This document shows positions 35,557-54,934 of a DNA stretch of 64,000 nt, one piece after another; within the stretch, counting starts at the first letter, position 1, and each line of letters opens with the position of its first letter. The stretch covers positions 826,266 through 890,265 of the forward strand of contig NW_027192201.1 in assembly GCF_041956535.1 (NCBI RefSeq), in the 5' to 3' direction. Under the pieces are notes generated by a model, which saw nothing but the letters and a program-made list of their open reading frames with translations, ran no database searches and had not been told where the DNA came from. Made by a program: the position numbers and the translations under genes. The DNA comes from Calcarisporiella thermophila CBS 279.70 (taxonomy: Eukaryota > Fungi > Calcarisporiellomycota).

Positions 35557-37535
35557 ATGTCGGCATTCCTTGAAGAGGCAGAATATGACGCGATCGTATT
35601 GGGAACTGGGCTCGTGGAGTCCATAATTGCCGGGTAGAGATTAGATTAGGATAGGATGATGAAGTTTGTTTTAATTCATTTTGGTCTCTGAATCAAATTT
35701 AGTGCACTTGCTTATCAAGGAAAACGCGTGCTTCATCTGGATCAGAATGCACATTATGGAGGCAATTGGAGCTCTGTTACGATCGAAGAATTGATGCAGC
35801 TTATTACCATGCTAAAATCTGGACCAGAGCCCGCCGAATTGTCCTCCTCTCTAAATGTCGATTTTCAACGATCACAGTGCGATTATTTTTTAGATGTAGA
35901 GTGTGAAGGTGACTTGGAGGTGCTGAAAGATGAATCGCGAAAATACGCGTTAGATCTGTGCCCAAAACTCGTGCAATGTACGGGAGAAATGGTGGAGGCC
36001 CTGATTCGCTCTGGTGTTGGCAAGTACTTGGAGTTTAAAGCGCTCGAGAGTATATCTATACTTGATTCTGAGAAGAAAACTTTCTTCAAGGTAATAACTA
36101 AAATTGCTTCTGCGCATCTGTCGGCTGAGGTGACAAACGGGTGCCTTCAAATTTTTAGGTTCCATCTTCAAAAAACGATGTGTTCACCAACACCGACCTC
36201 AGTCTGGTCGACAAACGGAGACTCATGAAGTTTCTTAAGGCCGCCCTTGAGGAGTCACTCGAACTTGAAGGTTATGAAGACCAGCCTATGAACAAATTCA
36301 TCGAGAATAAATTTGCACTGCAAGAAACAATGAAAAATACCATCCTCTATGCCATAGCAAGGAGCAATAACAGAGATGAATGTGAGCTACACCTATATTC
36401 TTTAATTGTTCCCGTTTTGTTTTACGATCTTGATATTGATGTTATTCATTTAGTGAAAACTAGCGAAGGCATTAAAAGGACCACCCAGTACATGAAATCA
36501 GTGGGACGATTTGGCAATTGTGCTTATATATGCCCGCTCTATGGGGGCAGCAGTGAAATTGTGCAAGGCTTTTGTCGGTAATTGATGACACTTCCCTTAA
36601 TAAATACCTTTGATACCATAGCTCCATCATATATGATTGAATAGGTTATGTGCGGTGCATGGAGGAACTTATATCCTTAATCATCCGATACGCAAGCTGT
36701 TCATTGACCCCGATACAGAGGAGTATCGCGTTGGCGTTGTTGGAGATAATGAGCAAGTGCTCAAAGCAAAACACTTGATTACTTCAATGGATTTTCTACC
36801 CTCGGAGTGGAAATCAACACCTGGCAAAAAGTTAGAGTCGCTCTTTTATCTATTTGAGCAGCCATGTTCTAACTATTAAGAACCCTTAACCTTGATAGCG
36901 AATTTGTTTCGCGGGCCATTGTCATTACCGATAAATCATCTGATGAAACTGAGGTGTCCGAATTTGTTTTCCCACCCGGTACGGTAGATAATCAGCACAC
37001 TGTTGTTGCTCTACGTCTCGCGTCTGGTGTCCAAGTGTGCCCGAAAGATAAATGTATTACTTTCAAAATGAACCTGAGGCTGAGACGTGGATATTAACTC
37101 GTGTATACTAGGCTTATACTACTTCTTTGCGAAATCCTCCGGGGGAAAGGCTAAGGATGAGCTTCTGCCCGCGATAAATGCATTAATCAATCCCTCCTCG
37201 ACTACTGATGAATCTCCACAAGGTGTTTAAATAACAAACTTGGACTTTACTTCTCTATGGAGAGACTCACTTCTATTCATAAACTGCTCATTTAAATAGA
37301 CATACCTCGAATTCACTTCTCATTTTATTTCCGTCAATGCATTCGTAGTCCAGCTGCTTCTCTTCCACAAGATATTTTGGTCTGCCCTGATCCTGATCCG
37401 AGTCTCGATCTAGAACAAGCAACACAGCTAGCAAGGGATTTATTCTGTCATATTACTGGTATGACCGAGGAAGAATTTTTGCCCGCTATTCAGAAGGAAG
37501 AAGATGAGGAAGATGTTCCAACAGAGGAATTATAG
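35557..37535 (+). CDS. Rab escort protein (REP/MRS6/CHM, GDI superfamily)
   Basis: YDAIVLGTGLVESIIAG, VLHLDQNAHYGG, RSGVGKYLEF, PLYGGSSEIVQGFCRLCAVHGGTYIL, FLP near the end and an acidic tail. Confidence 0.88.
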
Positions 37536-38080
37536 TTGAATCGATGTAAATATAATTATATTTATCCAATTTATCTACAAATATTGTGCTACAATTCCTA
37601 TAAATTATTCCCCTCAAGTAAAATTTGATGTACGTTGAATTATATGTTAAACATGAAATGAAATGAGGAGTTTCTGTTAAAACTTATTACTGCATAATAG
37701 TGAAAGAATATCGCTGGAGATTCGATAGGGGATATTGCAAATTAATAGAACGAAATTTGTACCTATTCAATTATTTTCAGGATAATATATCCATAATTTA
37801 GAAGTAGTATGAGTTTATTTTCTTGGATAAACAGCACTATCTGCGTTTTCCGTAAAAATTATAGGCTGCTCCGAAATACAAGACAAATCTGTGGTGCTTT
37901 CACAGCTTCATAATTTGAATGGCCAAGGTGCATAATTAGATCGGCTACTGTAGGTCGATAGCTTATGTATTCGGTGTATCTTTTGCAAGCTTTTGCAATA
38001 AACCAGGCTTAGCGTATTTTTTTTATTAGACGTTGATTTAAACAAAAAATACTTCGAACAGAACAACGAGGGTAGCCTGT

Positions 38081-38347
38081 TTATTCGCAGCTACTTTTAC
38101 ACATAAGTGCGCATCCGGTTGGGCAAAAGGCGGGCCTACCACGACATCCTTTCACACATGTTTTGTAGCAACGATTGAAGCCTCCCGGGCAGGAATTAGA
38201 AGGGGCTGGAATATCGCGCTCAAAATACATTTTTTCATCACCAGCGATTTCTTGAACACTCAAATTCGTCTGCTTCAACTGGGATTGTTCTTGAGCGGAT
38301 ACAGCAAAAGTAAGAACCATTAGCGCGAGGATGGAGAGACTTTTCAT
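38081..38347 (-). CDS. Small secreted cysteine-rich prepropeptide (88 aa, 8 Cys)
   Basis: Signal peptide MKSLSILALMVLTFAVSA, pro-region ending in ER, and a cationic 44-aa C-terminus with CxxxC repeats. A TATAAAAG lies ~75 bp upstream. Confidence 0.85.
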   Translation of the reverse strand: MKSLSILALMVLTFAVSAQEQSQLKQTNLSVQEIAGDEKMYFERDIPAPSNSCPGGFNRCYKTCVKGCRGRPAFCPTGCALMCKSSCE

Positions 38348-41449: not shown

Positions 41450-42818
41450 TTACTCTTCAAATTTGCCGTTTCGTGCAGCAAAGTTTTTCTCAGAGTTCTG
41501 CATGGCCAAGAAGCTCTTCATAATGGGGAAAATGTCCTTGTGCACACGATTGCCCATGAAGACATCCTTTTAAATAAAATATATCGAAAATTAGCAAAAA
41601 CAGAGGGAAAAACAAATGACTTTTTTCATCTGAAGTATAAGCAAAAAGGTTTCCTGTTCTTACCTGGTGGCCATATTCGGGGAACACATAGAGCTGGAAA
41701 TTTTGTTTGCCTCTAACCTTCATGTGATTGTAAAGAGTCTCGTTAGATCCGGGGAATACACCGTTTTCTTTCCCGGTGACTAGCAGAACGGGGATATTAA
41801 TGTTGGTGGCAGCATCAAGGTAATCGTTGGGCATATCCGCAAATTGCTTATCCTTTGGATCCCACTTAATGAGCTTGCCCGCGTTGAGGCATTTTCTGAT
41901 GTGCCAGTCGTACTTGTAAGACGTCGCGCCATACAGATCACCAGTACGAGCATGAGTTTTGGGATCCAGGTTCTTATGCAACCAGACTCCTGGGAAGCCA
42001 ACCGACCACATGAAGGAAACCATATGGCACTCTGGGACTTCGCATTCCAAGTGGAAGAGAGACACGAGATTTCCTAATAGTCGGCGGAAGGTGTACATTC
42101 TCTCTTGGCTGAATTTGGGGGAAATGTGCTCCATCAACAAGTTAACAAGAATGGGGGCCACCTGGATCTTAAGCCAAGCGCCGGTTGTCACACGAGGGGT
42201 AAGGCCTGTCGAGTTGACGGTGATACTGCTAACGTCCGGAATGTTGCCTAGATCAGAAAAGAAAACATGTTTATCTTTCACGTGTACCAGAGATGACAAA
42301 AAGATAATTTACGTACCGGCGGCAGCGCTCATTAAAATAGACATGGCATTGACACAGTGGGCGATGATATGAATACTGGGGTTGGGCCCAACGACTTGGC
42401 GAACTGTCTCGACCATCTTCGGATTGTCGTACTTGGCGATATGGTCGAGGGTGTATTCGTGAACCTCGAGGTTGTAAGGCCAGCGCATCGAAATCCGATT
42501 GTCCACGCACCAGACATCGGTGTACCCGTTGTCCAGGAAATAGTTGACGATGTTGACGGGCTGCTCCGGCATAATGAACATGTCGCTGGAGGTAGTTAGG
42601 CCGTGCATGATAATAATGACATTGTTGCATTGGGCCGATCCACGCCTGAAGCGGGTGAGGGATAGACGCAACTTGTCTTCAGTAAGGAAGGTGTGATAAG
42701 ATATATCGGCATTGGGAACCCCTTCGTCGGTGAAGACAGCAATCTCGCGCTTGAATGGGGGGGGTCGAGTGATTCCAAGTAGATTGGTGACGCGATTGAT
42801 GATTTTAAAAGCAATCAT
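41450..42818 (-). CDS. Alpha/beta hydrolase with Cys nucleophile elbow (cholesterol-oxidase-associated hydrolase family), 400 aa, 3 exons
   Basis: HGLTTSSDMFIMPE, DVWCVDNR, IAHCVNAMS elbow, GKENGVF and YGHQDVFMG. Exons 42818-42317, 42247-41664 and 41566-41450 splice in frame. Confidence 0.88.
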
Positions 42819-43427
42819 TCTTTAATTGAGTAGGATTCCCTTTTTACGTTGGTCTAAATCGACGACGAGCACGCTAGACTGCTTGCATGCTTCCCGCTAC
42901 ATTTCAATCCCTTTTATATAGCCTTTTTAAGCTTCGATATGAAATGACCCGGGTTGATGGGAATATGCAGCTAAGTTATGTGACATGGGCTGATATGAAA
43001 ACTTAGGAGAGGACGGGGGCGGGAGGCTTGGCTTTTTCATGCCACATGCATGGGCCATTTCATGTGAAGAACCACTGATAGAATGGGAATTCGGGGCGGC
43101 AATTTTAACTTTATACTTCATTTATTTAAATTTTAATTTATCAAGTTCAAATTTCGCCCAAAAACAATTAAAGCGCGCAGCAGCTCCGTGCTTTGTACAA
43201 GTATAGAAGTGGAAGGAGAAAAAAGAAGAAGCAAAAGAAGAAGAAGAAGAAGAAGAAAAAAAAAAGATAATGAGAACGCAAATAGACGTGCCTCTCACGG
43301 TATGCATCGTACAGAAAATTACCGAAGTTGATAAGCGAATTTTAAACTTCAGTGGACTGCAGGTTTCATATTTAAACTCTGGGAAAACGCCGCCTTTCTC
43401 TCTCTACTTTCCTCTGGAAATCGGAAA
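42819..43427. promoter_or_regulatory. 609-bp bidirectional promoter region between hydrolase and oxidase
   Basis: Head-to-head ATGs. TATATAAAAG on the minus strand near 42910-42919 and a (GAA)n/A polypurine tract at ~43216-43266. Confidence 0.6.
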
Positions 43428-45649
43428 ATGTTGATTATTCCTTCAGACATCAAACCACTTGTCGACGCGATCAACAAGTCGGTTGTCGCAACCCCCGAGC
43501 TCACTTTTCGGGAGCGTATGCATGGCTCTATGGTGCAGCCCAAGGGCGGCACACGCGTGCCATGCCACATCAATATCAACTTTAACATCGACAACATGAC
43601 CGCCTTCAGCTATGATCGTACGTTCCGTATCACGGGGCAAGTCAACATCGGTGGTAAGGATTATAACATTCTCCAGGTTTGTTGCAGTCTCTTTTCCTTT
43701 CTTATGGCACAATTCTTTTCCGACGCTGATCTCCTACTTCTACTCTCACTATAGGGAATCGCTCAAATCCACCCTTATATGGATTTCTACACGAGCTCAA
43801 TCTTCTTCGTCTACAAACTGATTATTGAGGACGGAAATCGCAACCGTTTCTTATTCTACGGTGAAAAGAAAGTCCAACCAGGTGTTAACCCTTTTCAGGT
43901 AGGGGTCTTGAACTAATTTCCCGTTTTCTCTTCCAAGCTCAAATTTGTCTGGCATCTCTTATCTGACCCACTTTTTCAATCTAGCTCTGGACTAATCTTT
44001 CCGAATTAACCGTCTGGGTTTATAAATACACTGACGTTTGGGACACACCGCAAGAATTGGTCTACAGCGGCAAGATTAATATCAATGTCCTTGAATATTT
44101 GCCCGACCAGATTTTTGGTATCAGAAGCTCGCTGCCTGATGCAATGCAGTGGTTGTGGACTTTGTTTTGGTCCATTTCCAGGATTCACTCAAAGGTGAAC
44201 ATGCGAGCACTTACGCACTTGTTTACCACTGGTCCTGGAAGGTACCTCCAAAGATACAGCACTTACTTCAACTGGGACTGGGCTATTAAACAGACCGTTC
44301 CATCGCGCAACTTCAAGCGACCGAAGACCACCGAAGAACTCAGGCAAATCATTGATACAGCCAAGCGCAATAACCAGAGCATTCGCCTTGTGGGTTCGGC
44401 TCACAGTTTCAACGATATTTATCAGATCTATTCTGGAGATATCCTTCTGAGTCTTCACGATATGAAGCGCATCTTGGGCTTCGATCTCGAAAGGAAGCAA
44501 ATCACTTGCGAGCCCGGAGTTCCGTTGAGACAAGCGGCGTATTTCTTGCACGATTATGGCCTTACCTTGCCCAACCATGGTGCCTACATGGTTCAGACCG
44601 TTGCTGGGGCCATTTCAACTGGTACGCACGGAACTAGTGGTAAAAAGGACTCTAAGCGTCCCGCTACCCTTTTGGATAGTGTGGTATCAATGAAGATGCT
44701 CAACGAGAATGGCCAGATTGTGACTCTGGATCGCTCGCAGTTTGTAACACTTGGCCTGACGGGTGTCATTATCGAGGTTACAATTCAATGTGTAGACGTG
44801 TACTACCTTCATGCAAACCAACAATGGCGCAGTTGGGATCATATCCTCAACCACATGGACGAGTACAAGAACAACTATGCATTCTTTGAGGCTCGCGGTC
44901 CAATCGGCTCTTCAAAAGCTGCTCTCTATACGTACACGCAGATCCCATCCATTCCCAACTGGTTTGCGTACTACAACTTCTTTGTTCGCTTTATGTTCCG
45001 CATTGCCTATGACGTTGGCTCTATCCGCCTTCCCGCCTTCATCTACCGCATATTTTACGCTGTTGCCACAATGATCTATAGTCTTTGCCCCTTACGTGAA
45101 GTGAATACCTGGGCCCTGACCAAAGACTATGCACCTCCCCACGTGGAATCAGAGTGGGCCATTCCCTACTCGGAGACGGCTCGGGTTGTTCGCCAGGTAT
45201 TGACTCTACTCAACTCGCCTCCTCACCGCAATCTTGTGGGAGAGTTCCATATCCGGTTCGATCCGCCTTCCAACGCATGGATGAGTCTCGCCCATGACCG
45301 TGAGACCACTTATCTTGACTTCAACTTTACACGCACAAATAACCCACGCAAGATCGAGATGTGTCTCAAGGAAATTTACGACTATATGATTACTCTGGAC
45401 AAAGGCATTGCTCGCCCTCACTGGAGTAAGGCTTTCGATACCACGACCAAGGATGGTGCAAACACGATCAATTTCCAAGCCATGTATCCAATGCTTGAAC
45501 AATTCCGTAAATTTGCTGGTGAAAACACTCCCAAAGGTACTTTCTCGAGGAACCCATTCAATTCTCGTGTGCAACTCATCAAAAAAGACGTTAAAGCTGA
45601 TAAACTTGGAGGTGTGGTTGACAAAGAGCTTTTGGAAAAAGAGCTATAA
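43428..45649 (+). CDS. Two-domain protein: beta-rich N-terminal domain fused to an ALO/L-gulonolactone-oxidase-type FAD oxidase (685 aa, 3 exons)
   Basis: Exons 43428-43676, 43755-43898 and 43985-45649 join in frame. Motifs IRLVGSAHSFND, TVAGAISTGTHG, LGLTGVIIEVTIQC and RPHWSK. Confidence 0.88.
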
Positions 45650-46737: not shown

Positions 46738-48620
46738 CTAGGGGTAGAGATCAAAGCGTGTGCAGCACTTTTTGTAGGTTGGGGCCACCCGCGCTTTAGT
46801 GGCCTGTTCAAAGGCATAAGCAACCCGGAAGAGGACATCCTCCCGCAGCGATCCGCTAATGAAAACTAGTCCGTAGGGGAGACCATCTTTATCCAGAGCA
46901 ATAGGCACGCTAATAATAGGGTACCCAGCCACCGCGGTGGATGTTGCGAAGGGCACTTTGCCATAGGCCGGAAGGACCAAGACGTCAACACCATGCTTGG
47001 TCATCAGTGTGTCTATGCCTGTTTCTCCATCACGGAATTTTTTATGTCCACTGGCAAGCGCAGCTTTGTAGACCGGGTCCTCGATCCCCGTCGTGTTTTG
47101 CGACACGATGAAGACCTCTTGTCCGAATAACGACATCTCCTCAGCCTTGTGCGCATTGTTAAATGTTATTGCGTCGGCAAGGGTCCTAATAGGAGTCTGT
47201 TCCAGGTCCGTAAGATACTTGTTCAGATCGTGCTTAAATTCGGTAGTCAACACGATCACCTCTGAGTTGTTTGGGCTATTCCAAAAGGTGGGCTTGTTCG
47301 CTGCGAGATCGGCCATTTCCGCGTCAGAAACGAGATTGACCGGGTCCAGCACCGTTCCTCCCAGCTCCTTAAGCTTGGCGAGCGCTTGCTCAAACGTAGC
47401 CAGATCGTCTCCCAGGTCATTTTTGTCCCAGAAGAGATTGCGGGGTACTCCCAGCCTGATGCCCTGCAAATCTTTCTTCAAGTACTCGGTATAATTCAGA
47501 AGCTGTTTCCCTTTGACCACCTCTGTGGCCGCATCGCGTACATCGGCACCGGAGATCACACTAAGGATTAGAGCCGCATCCTCCACGGTGCGGGTCATGG
47601 GCCCGACGGAGTCCTGGGAATGGGAAACTGGGATGATCCCATCACGAGAGGTCAGCCCGACGGTTGGCTTGATCCCTACGATGAATCCCCTTGAGGCAGG
47701 GCCCGTAATTGAGCTATGGGTTTCGGTTCCAATGGATGCGGCGGCAAGATTTGCCGCGACAGATGTGCCAGAACCAGAGCTAGAGGCTGAGGGAGAGGCG
47801 CTCAAGACGTAGGGGCTCACGCACTGACCTCCGCGGGCACTCCAGCCCTCTTTAGAATTTGGGGAACGGAAGCTAGAAGGAACCAGTTAAAAGGATTAAT
47901 GCAATGTAACCTTGTAGCACCCTCCGCGGGGGGGGGGGGGAGAAGAATCTGGCGTACCCTGACCATTCGGCAAGATTGGCCTTGCCTAGGATAATGGCTC
48001 CAGCTTCGCGTAGCTTCTTAATAATGAAGGCATCTCGGGGAACCTTGGAGTGTAGCAGGGCCAGCGAACCAGCAGCTATGTGTAACAGAGTATCAAGTTA
48101 AGTGCCACAAACACAGAGCAGTACATTGAAATAGGAAGACGGCTACTGGTGTTCATGGAGTCCTTGGTGGCAATATTATCCTTCACTAAGACTATTCAAA
48201 AAAGGCGTCGACGATTCATTCAATTAATAAATCACAAAAAATGTAAACAGAAGCAGCATTCTTTTTACTTGGAATTCCATGGAGCGGACCACGCGGACCC
48301 TTCTGCGTTCTCTCTTCATCCAGTTGCTCGGCGATCGCCATTGCGTCGGCATTGACCTCAATGACTGAATGTAAATAAGGATCGATGGCTTGGATGCGTT
48401 TAATATAGCACTCCGTTAGCTGTTTTGCGGTGAGCTTCTTTTTGTTGAAGGCGTCTTGAAGCGCAAGTATATTAGTCTCAACGATGGTGAAACCGTTGCA
48501 GGAGCTGAGATCCTGGTCAAGCTTGAGAATGTCAGTGTCATTAGCTGGTTGTGGTGGCACAGCGGCAGAAATGGCGAAGAAGCCGAGAGTAAGGACGACA
48601 AAGTAGACCCTTTTTACCAT
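46738..48620 (-). CDS. Secreted amidase-signature-family enzyme, 4 exons
   Basis: Signal peptide MVKRVYFVVLTLGFFAISA, GPLHGIPILVKDNI (catalytic Lys), ASSSGS, GTETHSS and GIKPTVGLTSR. Confidence 0.92.
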
Positions 48621-49885
48621 TCTGAATGCGAATGGTGATGGTAATTGCAAAGAATAAAACAAGGTATTGGAGGGTGGGTTAGGGTGGGAGGACGAGGAGT
48701 TCGTGGGCAGTGAAAAGGGGAAGGTTTACCCGCTTTTGGTATATTTTTGCGCTACAGCCATCTTCTTTTGATGTACTTTATGACAACATGTCTTGCTACA
48801 TTTTATAGCAAGGAACATTGTATAGAAACGGGCAACCATCTGATGGTCGCCATTTAAATTTCTTAAGAGAGATTGCAAGAGCCGTCTGGAGATAATATAC
48901 TAATAATATAGAAACCTATATCTTTAAACGACCTCCTCACCAGAGTACTTATCTATCATCTTTAACGCATAATATTGTTGACATTGGAGAGATTAAGTCA
49001 TTAACAAAATATGCTCTTGAGATACCCCTTCTTGTCAATATAGTATCGTTGGATTTTCTATTGCCAAGAACACTGCAATCTCGGATAATTGCTCATTATT
49101 ATTTAATATTCATACAACTCTTCACAAAATCAAAATATGTTTGTCCTTTATCTCCTAAACTTGTAATTACAGCTAAAACGGGCATAAAAGGTGCGCAAAC
49201 CACGTTTGCCTGGATGCAGCACATCTTAAATCCCAGTTTATCAAATATCTTAGCTGCATACTTATCATAAGATTTTTCACACACTCCAAATCCGATTGAA
49301 ATTTGCGACTCTATCGTAGAAAGATTTGCAAACAGTTGTGAAAAAATATGGAGTAAATTCGGTACTATAATGATGCATAGACAAAATGTTCAATTTATTT
49401 ACTAAGAAAATAAACTTCGCTCTTCAAGAGTACAATCTTTTTATTGTATACATCGCAAGGGTTAATGAGTAGTATCTGGAGTTATGAATTATCGTTTGAC
49501 TTGAATAGCCAAATTAATTCAATTTTCATATTCATGAAAAAGATTTTAGCTTGTTTCTGATTGAAGAGTTTTCAATGGATATTCCATTATGGCAATTCTA
49601 TCTTAAAATGAAAAGCTTCGACTTTCAAAGAATAGTTTGAATATTACAAGATTTATTAAATATTTTCCTCCCTACCTGCAGATGCCTCTCTGATTTTTTT
49701 AATCTGCACAATGCATGCGGTTAAAGGCATTTTATAGCAAAGACTCAGAGTGTCAAAATATTTAGCATGAGAACCCTTTACCGTATTTGATATGAGTACA
49801 ATTATATTAAAATAAAAAAAATAAATACACATCGTCGAGTTTTGAAATGAAGCAGATCTGTACAAAAAAATTAGTTGTATAGCAT

Positions 49886-52372
49886 TTAGACACTTCTCTT
49901 GGGGAGTCTTTTTTCTGGGTAGCAAGTATCAGGGACCGGAGATTCAACTGGGTCCCGGCTACTCTCGATATACGTATTGATAAAACGCTGAGTTGACATA
50001 CCGTCCCCTATTGCTTCTTTGTAATAGTTTCTGAAATTGTAATCGTAGCCTGTGTCATCAACTATGCCGCTGTTCGAATCCAAAGTTGAGTCAATATTGG
50101 GAGAAAATTTGAATAGGGAGGGGACATCTGGTGTGAAGGTGGTGCTCGTAGAATAATCAGAATCTTCGGAGAAAGCGAAAGAGGATTGATTCACGGATGC
50201 ATACAAATCACTAATATTTAATATAATTATTATTGTGAGTGACAGCGTGTTCAGTTATAAAACAGAGCTATAACTACACACTTATCTAGAAACTGGGTTG
50301 GAGAAGGCATGAAACTCAAAAACGGAGTCTCAGAAGATGAAGCTTCCGAAGACTGAAATTCCGAAGATTGCACGAGCATTGCAAGCAAAGAGATTTGTTT
50401 TTGGCTTTTTAAATTTTCCACATTCGCTATCGAGTCAAGACTTATATGAGGGATTACCACAGGCATAATTGATTGTTGGCTACTCTCTTCCCTGGACTGT
50501 GTTATAGGCAACTCGCTGATCTCTGTGACACTCACTATATCTCTGAGAGTACCAACAAACTGCTCATCGCGATAGGCTAGTTGATTAGCTTCTAATAAGT
50601 CCAGCGTTCTTCTCAAATACCGGAGAGCATTCTTGCGCTGAACTCCTGTTCCAGATCCTGCGATTAGGATGTGAATGCGTGCACTCGTGTTCAGTCCAAA
50701 TGCGACCATTGAGTGAAGTTCCAGACTGTTGGGTATTCCAAGCACTAATTCTGATAAGTTGACAATAGTGTCCGCAGCAGTGATGCATTCGGTAGCGGAA
50801 CTTTCCTCAAGGAACACCAAGAGACTGGTCTCCATTTTTGGAAAATATGAGTGGATATTAAGGATATTGAGGCAGAGAAGTATCTCGGCAGCATTCAACG
50901 GAGCAAGGTCAGAGGGAATCGAATTCATCCAATCATGCAATTTAGAACGCAACTTCGGCATATAGTTTTGGATTGGAATTGGATCCTCCCCTGCAGCTTC
51001 ATTTTTGTCGAGGTAATACAATGAACAGAAACCAGCTTTGGGCGTAATATTGATCCATATATCCGATAAGATCCCCACCAAATAGGCGCAGTTATAGAAT
51101 CTACGAATTGCGGCAGCACTTTCCTGAAGATATGCATTGTATCCATTCCTTTTATCCAGAGCGAAGAGCACCGATTCACTTTCATTCTTGACGGGCAGTT
51201 TCACTTTGTTTATAGCCAGGTCGCGATCCATTCTTGAACGAACATGAAAATAGGTCCACGTTAGCCCAAGACGCATTACCCACCAGATGTTATTACGAAG
51301 CTCGCGCTCAATTGGGTCAAGCTTTATATCAAAGTGTTCACTGTCCTGTTCAGGTATTCGTAATTCAAATATCATCTTCCATGCCATCGCAAGTAATGGT
51401 ATTCCTTTATTACATCGACCAATGAATGTTAAATGTGCACCTAGGAGCAATATGCCTTGTAGTTTGGTGAGGTTAGCTTCGGGCGTCTCGTGCTCTAGCA
51501 ATGCGAGCGCGTATTCTGTAAACACAGATCCAGGTGTTCCAAGTCTCGTTTGGTTAAATAAGGGGATACCCATATTGTATAGAACCATTGCGAACACGAC
51601 CGAATATAATAGAGGATCATATCGATTTTCGCAATAATTCTGAATCATAATCGAACGATTGAGTACCGTTGGATAAGCATACACTCGAAACCACATATTG
51701 ATAAGTGCAATTGCTTGGGTATGCGAAATGGATTTGAACGGATCCCTATGTTTGAAAACATCTGAAGATTCCTGATCGATTCCTTTATCGCTTACATCGA
51801 GAAGTGGAAATTTTTTTTGAACCCTCTCATCTATGCTTAGAGAACTTATTGCTTCAATGATTATGGCTAACATGTCATTTGTTTTTATGTTGGCGCCAGG
51901 GAGAGACTTGAACATTACACCTTTCGCCCATCGCCACATTAAGAGTGGCTCACAAGAGGGGGCTTCCATAGATTTGATCTGAATGGTGGAGCAGGATTAA
52001 ATAAAGTCAAAATGGTATTAATTGTCGAAGACTTACCCCCAGACCATTAATTACACTATCTAATTTTCCCAAACTAACCTGGAAACATTGTAATAAAGAA
52101 GGGCGTCTCATTTTCAACACCATACTATTTCCAATGTCAAGTATTATCTGTTCATTCTGCTGGAGAAAACTATTACGTGGACGCCCTCTACGGGCTACTA
52201 TGTCTCCGAACAAGCACTTGATGCCAAGTTTCTTACATCTTAAACATCCTTGAGGGTTACCATCGCAATTCTGCTTCTTCTGGCGACATGCTTGGCATGA
52301 TTTTCGATTGTGGAAAGCGTTTTCGTTTGATGGGTCATGGAGAATGAAAATATGCTTTGTGACAGGTGGCAT
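49886..52372 (-). CDS. Zn(II)2Cys6 transcription factor with fungal middle homology region, 3 exons
   Basis: CQACRQKKQNCDGNPQGCLRCKKLGIKC, RRGRPR, ERELRNNIWW and an acidic/Ser C-terminus. Introns at 51979-52036 and ~50211-50281. Confidence 0.9.
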
Positions 52373-53187: not shown

Positions 53188-53937
53188 CTAGCGTGCCAAG
53201 AGACCTCCGTTGACAAACAAGGTTTGTGCGGTTACCCATTGCGATCGAGGTGAAGCGAGGAACTCAATCACAGGTACTATGTCTTCAATCATACCAAGTC
53301 GCTTTGCGACACTCATTTGTGTAAACATGGATACGGAGTCCGGTGTCTCTTGTCCATGGAAGAAGTCCGTGTCAATGGGACCCGGAGCAACTGTATTCAC
53401 TGTGACACCGCGCTCACCTATTTCCTTAGCTAGTGCTCGAGTGAAATCCTCGAGTGGAGCTTTGGAACCGGCATAGACGGAATAAAATGGCGTAGTAACT
53501 CCTAGAAGTGAAGTTCCCATGTTGATGATCCGGCCACCATCTTTAATATGGCGTGCGGCCTCTTGCATGACAAAGAAGGCAGCCTTGGCATTGACCCCAA
53601 AAGAACTGTCGAAATCTTCCTCAGTGATATCGATGAAAGGTTTTTTGATTACTTTTCCGGCATTGTTGATAACAATATCGACACGGCCGAATGTTTCGAG
53701 TATTTTAGCGAAAATGGCCCGAACTGTCTTGGGGTTTGAAAGTTCACCTTCCACGATCAAGGCGCGTCGGCCTTTGGCACGCACGAGCTGTGCGGTTTGC
53801 TCTGCCTCCCCCTTAGTGTTAGATGAACGGTGGTGGACGGCCACGTCCGCCCCAGCTTTCGCTAATGCATCCGCAAACGCTCTTCCCATATTTTTGGATG
53901 AGCCGGTGATGAATGCGACTTTACCTGAAAGATCCAT
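53188..53937 (-). CDS. Classical short-chain dehydrogenase/reductase, intronless, PRK12744-like
   Basis: TGSSKNMG cofactor motif, NNAG, TSLLG, YAGSK catalytic motif and PGPIDTDFF. Confidence 0.93.
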   Translation of the reverse strand: MDLSGKVAFITGSSKNMGRAFADALAKAGADVAVHHRSSNTKGEAEQTAQLVRAKGRRALIVEGELSNPKTVRAIFAKILETFGRVDIVINNAGKVIKKPFIDITEEDFDSSFGVNAKAAFFVMQEAARHIKDGGRIINMGTSLLGVTTPFYSVYAGSKAPLEDFTRALAKEIGERGVTVNTVAPGPIDTDFFHGQETPDSVSMFTQMSVAKRLGMIEDIVPVIEFLASPRSQWVTAQTLFVNGGLLAR

Positions 53938-54028: not shown

Positions 54029-54934
54029 CGGATGAGGTTGGGCTAAGTGAAGGGCTAAAATCCCTTGTGAATATATGCTTGAGAGATGTTTTGGAGGCGG
54101 GTCCAACCCTGGTCGATCATTTTGACCAGTAAGCAGACGCAATTCCATACTTGATTTTTGCCAAATTGAGGATTGAACAATTTGAAAATTTGATACAGAT
54201 CTAGTAGAAATTTATTATCACATCGCGGATGAGGTTGGGCTAAATGAAGGGCTAAAATNNNNNNNNNNNNNNNNNNNNNNNNNNNNNNNNNNNNNNNNNN
54301 NNNNNNNNNNNNNNNNNNNNNNNNNNNNNNNNNNNNNNNNNNNNNNNNNNNNNNNNNNNNNNNNNNNNNNNNNNNNNNNNNNNNNNNNNNNNNNNNNNNN
54401 NNNNNNNNNNNNNNNNNNNNNNNNNNNNNNNNNNNNNNNNNNNNNNNNNNNNNNNNNNNNNNNNNNNNNNNNNNNNNNNNNNNNNNNNNNNNNNNNNNNN
54501 NNNNNNNNNNNNNNNNNNNNNNNNNNNNNNNNNNNNNNNNNNNNNNNNNNNNNNNNNNNNNNNNNNNNNNNNNNNNNNNNNNNNNNNNNNNNNNNNNNNN
54601 NNNNNNNNNNNNNNNNNNNNNNNNNNNNNNNNNNNNNNNNNNNNNNNNNNNNNNNNNNNNNNNNNNNNNNNNNNNNNATACAGATCTAGTGAAATTTATT
54701 ATCACATCGCGGATGAGGTTGGGCTAAATGAAGGGCTAAAATCCCTTGTGAATATATGCTTGAGAGATTATGTTTTGGAGGCGGGTCCAACCCTGGTCGA
54801 CCATTTCGATCAGTAAGCAGACGCAATTCCATACTTGATTTTTGCCAAGTTGAGGATTGAACAATTTGAAAATTTGATACAGATCTAGTAAAATTTATTA
54901 TCACATCGCGGATGAGGTTGGGCTAATGAAGGGC
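54029..54934. repeat. Tandem ~197-199-bp repeat array spanning an assembly gap
   Basis: Unit starts (CGGATGAGGTTGGGCTAA) at 54029, 54226, 54710 and 54909. Copies differ by a few substitutions and indels. Confidence 0.9.
54259..54677. other. Assembly gap (419 N)
   Basis: Run of N. Confidence 1.

Follow-up and report, generated by a model that had tools for sequence, protein, structure and literature searches.

A head-to-head gene pair in the fungus Calcarisporiella thermophila carries the hydrolase and middle domain of bacterial 'cholesterol oxidase' modules together with an ALO-type oxidase

Does a pair of fungal genes represent a bacterial enzyme module in which the oxidase has been exchanged? 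The pair, a hydrolase gene and an oxidase gene in head-to-head orientation, lies in a 64,000-nucleotide stretch of the genome of Calcarisporiella thermophila CBS 279.70 (contig NW_027192201.1), the whole of which we call the window. The module in question is that of bacterial 'cholesterol oxidase' proteins and gene clusters, which combine a GMC oxidase, a hydrolase and an unnamed middle domain, here called MID. Our preferred reading, to which we give a probability of about 0.5, is that the two fungal genes, with three domains between them, are co-inherited as one unit, act on a lipophilic alcohol or its ester, and derive from the bacterial module of GMC, MID and Cys-hydrolase.

The first ~205 residues of the 685-residue oxidase are homologous to bacterial MID. 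The MID profile was made from bacterial sequences only, and 160 bacterial and metagenomic loci were gathered through the hydrolase. The profile matches oxidase exon 1 (profile positions 6-71), exon 2 (100-124) and exon 3 (129-181) in colinear order, each match being weak, and among about 120 targets it ranks exon 2 first, exon 1 second and exon 3 fourth. Profile-profile comparison (hhalign) of the fungal N-terminal domain with bacterial MID gave a probability of 94.9% (E 4.7e-8, 150 columns). An Atlas model of the fungal domain (residues 18-180) reached template modelling (TM) scores of 0.81-0.84 to the clusters retrieved, and a bacterial MID model 0.87-0.94. Both queries retrieved the same clusters, comprising GMC 'cholesterol oxidase' proteins, MID-hydrolase fusions, DUF362 proteins and stand-alone copies; they differed in that thioester reductases were also retrieved by the fungal MID and patatin fusions by the bacterial one. 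By sequence, a stand-alone MID (P0122) bridges the fusion (E 1e-7) and a bacterial MID (E 3e-14). A word-indexed search with the N-terminal domain of a homologous fusion (P0003) gave no match, and the link is visible only to HMMER profiles, hhalign and structure. The preliminary description of this locus had identified the N-terminal domain as the middle domain of GMC/hydrolase proteins; the motifs it quoted are present, and the identification is borne out by the order of the profile matches, the hhalign probability and a predicted-model TM of 0.84. A loose search of the fungal genome, which missed even the MID of the window, found no second copy.

Both folds predicted here, for MID and for the hydrolase, are models of bacterial homologues. 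In the MID model, eight antiparallel strands form a barrel that carries a helix at its end (predicted local distance difference test score, pLDDT, 89). A Tyr (120/120 sequences), a Lys (119/120) and a Glu (117/118) are conserved, with Tyr103, Lys121 and Glu29 as their equivalents in the window protein, which also keeps the Trp and has all the motifs of a module-type MID (F-x-E-x-M-x-G, Tyr, G-x-K and W). The strand alternation pattern suggests that the Glu, Tyr and Lys face the barrel interior. Pfam gave no match for oxidase exons 1-2, searches of Pfam and PDB sequences with 68 MID sequences found no relative, and Foldseek with the MID model returned nothing at E<=0.001. Structural matches were generic 8-strand barrels only (best Z 9.9). 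The model is similar to streptavidin/lipocalin-like 8-stranded beta-barrels (Z 8-10 to avidins, Cap15 and de novo barrels), but has no sequence kinship with them in Pfam or PDB, and the common fold gives no function. A divergent stand-alone MID (P0121; L092, 235-864) was also seen on a 1-kb contig of 34% GC with unrelated neighbours; it groups with ALO-linked MIDs with weak support.

The remainder of the oxidase is of the ALO/VAO type, as had been proposed, with Pfam matches of exon 3 to FAD_binding_4 (E 3e-26) and ALO (E 2e-18). The nearest solved relatives of this exon are galactonolactone dehydrogenase and alditol oxidase (AldO). Like ALO, GULO, GALDH and AldO, members of the VAO/PCMH fold, the window oxidase combines both domains with a flavin-linking His (position His271), the HWxK motif and the O1-binding Arg and Lys. 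It differs from them by the additional 205-residue MID, by NCBIfam scores far below the curated cut-offs (144.7 against 396.8 bits for TIGR01678, 116 against 292 for TIGR01679) and by replaced polyol residues. In AldO, Arg322 and Lys375 bind the substrate O1 (PMC8788829). These two residues align with Arg555 and Lys613, and the polyol-binding Glu320, His343 and Thr345 with His553, Asp576 and Asn578, of which the last two adjoin an alignment gap; the His, Asp and Asn are common to all three MID-ALO fusions found (see below). Retention of the Arg and Lys with replacement of the polyol residues would fit oxidation of an alcohol other than a sugar polyol. Neither the type I (GMC) fold nor the type II (VAO) substrate domain of cholesterol oxidases was detected by Pfam, which reports FAD_binding_4 and ALO only, and no cholesterol oxidase is among the PDB matches of exon 3. 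The fungus's own ALO-like paralogs are separate from the window ALO in the tree, and the VAO genes of the bacterial clusters fall in a different clade; both were rejected as its source.

The neighbouring hydrolase is ~50% identical to members of the bacterial subfamily and has the linked Cys elbow, H-x-E-C-x4-C-H and YGHxD motifs of the module hydrolase, with Asn instead of Gly at elbow position +2. Its proposed membership of the module's hydrolase family is supported, with a small correction to the elbow sequence: AHCVN takes the place of AHCxG in the eukaryote-like members (the window protein, a paralog on contig C10, and P0126, from a metagenome-collection fragment, L184). The elbow Cys155 aligns with the gastric lipase Ser and His361 occupies the catalytic His position. 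Asn329 stands at the triad-acid position, where 144/159 homologues also have Asn, and the lid motif H-x-E-C-x4-C-H, present in 151/159, is either a metal site or the counterpart of the lipase lid disulfide. The model of a bacterial homologue (L012, pLDDT 94) has an alpha/beta-hydrolase core with a lipase cap; its best solved match is gastric lipase (Z 33.4, 334 residues aligned), with polyhydroxyalkanoate (PHA) synthase second (Z 25.8) and the C-C hydrolase DxnB2 at Z 22.3. The acid lipases (gastric lipase and lysosomal acid lipase/cholesteryl ester hydrolase) are thus the nearest solved fold, cap included, and the HGL loop and H-x-D motif are in register with theirs. The triad of acid lipase is Ser153/Asp324/His353 (PMC7397744), whereas the window protein has Cys155, Asn329 and His361 in place of a Ser-Asp-His triad with G-x-S-x-G, and no signal peptide is evident. 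The donor of the hydrolase differs by tree: exon 2 is placed basal to the bacterial subfamily, exon 1 inside a 29-row group.

The C10 paralog (L004, 7565-8930; G000:C10, about 36564-37930) is 85% identical to the window hydrolase and has the same two intron positions. Just downstream of it, an intact open reading frame (ORF) of 824 residues (L005, 2904-5378, minus strand) has a weak RVT_1 match (E 2e-5); it seems more like the cellular rvt reverse-transcriptase genes than like a transposon.

Is the oxidase of the module then swapped? GTDB genomes encode the hydrolase subfamily in 433 or more places and, in the loci examined, nearly always together with GMC and MID. Both lie within 6 kb in 61 of the 66 full-flank bacterial loci, and in the five exceptions the module GMC is fused to or adjoins MID elsewhere in the genome. 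The hydrolase family and MID are what the fungal pair has in common with bacterial modules such as the Ralstonia triple fusion BCM05185, Pseudonocardia WP_060577098-100, where hydrolase and oxidase genes likewise lie head-to-head, and Streptomyces UKZ03264-66. It differs from them in lacking GMC, in its spliced genes, in the AHCVN elbow and in having MID N-terminal to ALO (0/160 bacterial loci). That no GMC oxidase accompanies the pair had been noted before, and a module-type GMC was not found in the genome either (eight best GMC loci, in a loose first-look search of an assembly with masked stretches). The module GMC query gave a weak C-terminal match only; with the module profile, the eight best fungal GMC loci reach <=42 bits, compared with 493 for a control from bacteria, and none has a MID beside it. 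A GMC gene on contig C13 was rejected as a candidate for the missing module oxidase. GMC_oxred_N matches in the genome number 17, one of them in a gene that is presumably long-chain-alcohol-oxidase-like.

Since the module GMC is present in all 66 full-flank bacterial loci or genomes and none was found in the fungus, the oxidase swap is real in gene content. A VAO-type gene stands beside GMC in 21 bacterial loci, so the ALO domain can be an extra step and not a substitute. The non-orthologous replacement suggested in the preliminary description is accordingly sustained as to gene content (no module GMC found, ALO fused to MID), whereas the ALO domain may or may not take over the function of GMC, given that 21/160 loci carry both. 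The 'cholesterol oxidase' label itself appears to stem from similarity of the GMC protein to Streptomyces cholesterol oxidase (E 1e-24), and we found no paper on the function of the GMC/MID/hydrolase module.

The fusion is rare and the pair is co-inherited. Among 1.84 billion representative proteins, the MID-ALO fusion occurs only in P0001 (the window protein), P0002 and P0003, whose ALO domains form a clade (support 99). Sister to this clade is a truncated ALO (P0004), its N-terminus cut, from a metagenome-collection fragment (L094). On the metagenomic contig that encodes P0003 (L007, 33% GC), the start of the same hydrolase lies head-to-head 268 bp upstream; its best matches are the C. thermophila genes, the tree places it with the window hydrolase (support 97), and the contig is probably eukaryotic. 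The head-to-head order is thus kept at 35-43% protein identity and at very different GC content of third codon positions (GC3; 0.55 versus 0.21). A search for the architecture of middle domain, FAD_binding_4 and ALO, suggested as a check on the locus, returned three proteins and one further case of hydrolase synteny, and with both L007 genes grouping with the fungal ones the expected co-inheritance is supported. P0002 is transcript-like, without visible neighbours.

The pair probably originated by gene transfer from bacteria to a eukaryote, followed by fusion and intron gain. A plausible unfused precursor is found on L093 (3-2177), where an ALO gene is directly followed by a stand-alone MID and an SDR, converging on MFS transporter and membrane-fusion-like genes. 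This operon is probably bacterial; the tree does not place its ALO as sister to the fusion clade, and the contig is cut upstream of it. No credible ALO-linked MID was found in 401 gammaproteobacterial genomes.

The partners and neighbours of MID include several of lipid type, namely patatin, thioester reductase behind a type I polyketide synthase (PKS), lipase 3 and MMPL. Together with the acid-lipase fold and the ligand-binding type of barrel they give contextual support for a lipid substrate, and the substrate of the fungal pair is probably a lipid alcohol or ester. The ALO/AldO-type domain, judged by its family and the retained Arg555 and Lys613, would oxidise CH-OH to a carbonyl with release of H2O2, and flavin adenine dinucleotide is probably bound covalently at His271. 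It would thereby supply the carbonyl-forming step given in bacteria by the cholesterol-oxidase-like GMC. In the MID barrel, a pocket bounded by Glu29, Tyr103 and Lys121 may accommodate the hydrophobic substrate or else the carbonyl product, and the barrel with its terminal helix could bring the enzyme to the surface of a membrane or of lipid. The partner, whose acid-lipase fold is taken from the homologue model, might cleave or transfer an acyl group through a Cys155 thioester, assisted by His361 and Asn329. The activities, the sequence in which they act and the kind of substrate are all inferred. Hydration and C-C cleavage had also been suggested; nothing specific supports either, and the nearest solved fold of the hydrolase is gastric/lysosomal acid lipase.

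Several observations weigh against the co-inherited lipid-processing unit. The pair is shown at two loci only, and all trees have long branches. The MID of P0002 has lost both Glu and Lys, and neither oxidase nor MID was found in the flanks read beside the C10 hydrolase paralog, where an N-run lies 1.2 kb upstream. The change of elbow Gly to Asn and an Asn as triad acid make ordinary esterase activity uncertain. Finally, a FAD_binding_4 gene is nearby in 39/160 bacterial loci, including the 21 in which it occurs together with GMC. These last loci, in which the gene often adjoins the hydrolase, are also what favours loss over replacement, a rather unlikely but serious alternative in which ALO/VAO is an additional pathway step and the GMC was lost, or a host GMC (e.g., the long-chain alcohol oxidase presumed above, among the 17 GMC_oxred_N matches) acts in trans, giving a truncated or different conversion. 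In L106, for example, a FAD_binding_4 gene with a weak ALO domain lies between MID-hydrolase and GMC. Loss is opposed by the tree, in which the cluster-associated bacterial VAO proteins make up a clade of their own at a long distance from the fungal ALO, with none fused to MID in 160 loci, and by the position of ALO in the fusion, a place where GMC is often fused to MID. Historical linkage, by which the genes arrived together from a bacterium and merely stayed adjacent, with MID a decaying passenger and the enzymes now separate in their work, would explain the degenerate MID of P0002 and the orphan hydrolase on C10. We give it very little credence, as the head-to-head order has held despite the divergence in protein sequence and GC3, and the window MID retains Glu, Tyr, Lys and Trp with two clean introns.

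Other readings accept the unit and assign it different chemistry. An unlikely one would make MID an undescribed beta-barrel enzyme family whose Lys, Tyr and Glu act on carbonyls from a GMC oxidase, an ALO-type oxidase or a thioester reductase, with a lipase-fold Cys-His-Asn, possibly metal-binding, enzyme as partner. If this were true, hundreds of bacterial genomes would contain a new lipid-cleavage pathway wrongly labelled 'cholesterol oxidase', and the fungal pair would be its minimal form in eukaryotes. In a specific form that we consider improbable, and that comes near the scheme of the preliminary description, Lys121 forms a Schiff base with the oxidase-made carbonyl, Tyr and Glu serve as acid and base (retro-aldol, dehydration or isomerisation), and hydrolysis of the product by the Cys enzyme follows, perhaps with cleavage of a C-C bond. 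The near-invariant and seemingly interior-facing residues, the carbonyl products of all three unrelated partners and an acetoacetate-decarboxylase-family gene in one cluster speak for such catalysis; the generic barrel matches, the loss of Glu and Lys in P0002, the fusion of MID to patatin and DUF362 proteins too, and a hydrolase nearer to acid lipases than to C-C hydrolases speak against it. It is more doubtful still that the pair is biosynthetic, its Cys enzyme being an acyltransferase like PHA synthase that tailors a defence or signal lipid instead of degrading one. The elbow Cys is as in PhaC, the second-best fold match, and a related MID and hydrolase follow a type I PKS and thioester reductase on Rhodococcus plasmids. 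Among the window ORFs, however, there was no sign of a synthase, an acyl-CoA ligase or a carrier gene, and the Rhodococcus hydrolase belongs to a distant subfamily (~27%).

The fungal pair is a genuine new architecture, rare and conserved, of a module that is widespread and uncharacterised. Since MID and hydrolase are kept with a different oxidase, it suggests that these two form the core and that the oxidase can be exchanged; the chemistry is thereby narrowed to a carbonyl-forming step. The two-gene form offers a small system for finding the module's substrate, and both the VAO-family oxidase, with its altered active site, and the lipase-fold enzyme, with its unusual Cys/His/Asn set, have possible use in biocatalysis. 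MID itself has no Pfam or PDB entry despite the many genomes in which the hydrolase subfamily is found.

The layout of the pair is given in Table 1. As first described, the genes are spliced and diverge head-to-head with their ATGs 609 bp apart; splice-site and frame checks support this, and the NCBI model of the oxidase (P0001) is identical to ours (685 residues). Both oxidase introns (78 and 86 nt) are phase 0 and GT..AG; their splicing is based on the annotation and on two intronless homologues that align over both exon junctions. The hydrolase (400 residues) has introns of 69 and 97 nt. The genes may share one promoter region, in which no conserved DNA motif was found by comparison with L007 or the hydrolase paralog. 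A 12-mer common to this region and an amidase/regulator promoter was rejected, as 9/100 shuffles reach it.

Table 1. Features of the hydrolase/oxidase pair (window coordinates).
Feature	Position	Strand	Content
Hydrolase exon 3, residues 363-400 + stop	41450..41566	-	profile positions 344-365
Hydrolase exon 2, residues 168-362	41664..42247	-	cap/lid H233-x-E-C-x4-C-H242; Asn329 (triad-acid position); His361 (YGHQ)
Hydrolase exon 1, residues 1-167	42317..42818	-	HGL oxyanion loop; nucleophile elbow AHCVN with Cys155 (codon 42354-42356)
Divergent intergenic region, 609 bp	42819..43427	.	GAA-rich tract 43212-43260
Oxidase exon 1, residues 1-83	43428..43676	+	first half of MID beta-barrel; F-x-E29-x-M-x-G motif
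Oxidase exon 2, residues 84-131	43755..43898	+	MID strands carrying Tyr103 and G-x-Lys121
Oxidase exon 3, whole	43985..45649	+	
Oxidase exon 3 start, residues 132-205	43985..44206	+	end of MID barrel (Trp133); C-terminal hydrophobic helix
FAD_binding_4 domain, residues 243-379	44318..44728	+	His271 in GSAHS, flavin-linking His position
ALO-type cap domain (396-652) and C-terminus	44777..45649	+	Arg555 and Lys613 (HWSK) kept; His553, Asp576 and Asn578 replace AldO Glu320, His343 and Thr345

Bacterial loci with additional genes were also observed. Rhodococcus plasmids (L191, 1-15135; L010) encode a type I PKS, a thioester reductase fused to MID, a related hydrolase and a crotonyl-CoA carboxylase/reductase, and are a biosynthetic setting for MID and hydrolase. 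Solirubrobacteraceae clusters (L014, L029, L055 and L089) combine a membrane protein, a VAO-type oxidase, the hydrolase and an MMPL transporter; GMC and MID are encoded at another place in the same genome, at a distance of 3-11 kb in 3/4. Among L012-L091, the extra enzyme genes that most often accompany the module encode two kinds of calcineurin-like metallophosphoesterase (17 and 13 loci).

Beyond the pair, the window encodes an amidase with a signal-peptide-like start (46738-48662), a Zn2Cys6 regulator (50251-52300, zinc cluster 52214-52297) and an intronless SDR (53188-53937), all on the minus strand; nothing ties any of them to the pair. The SDR was rejected as an orthologue of that on L093 (24%), and an N run (54259-54677) lies upstream of it, where TRF detected no tandem array. 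On the other side of the pair, an 88-residue ORF (38081-38347, minus strand) without Pfam match has a signal-peptide-like start and an 8-Cys tail.

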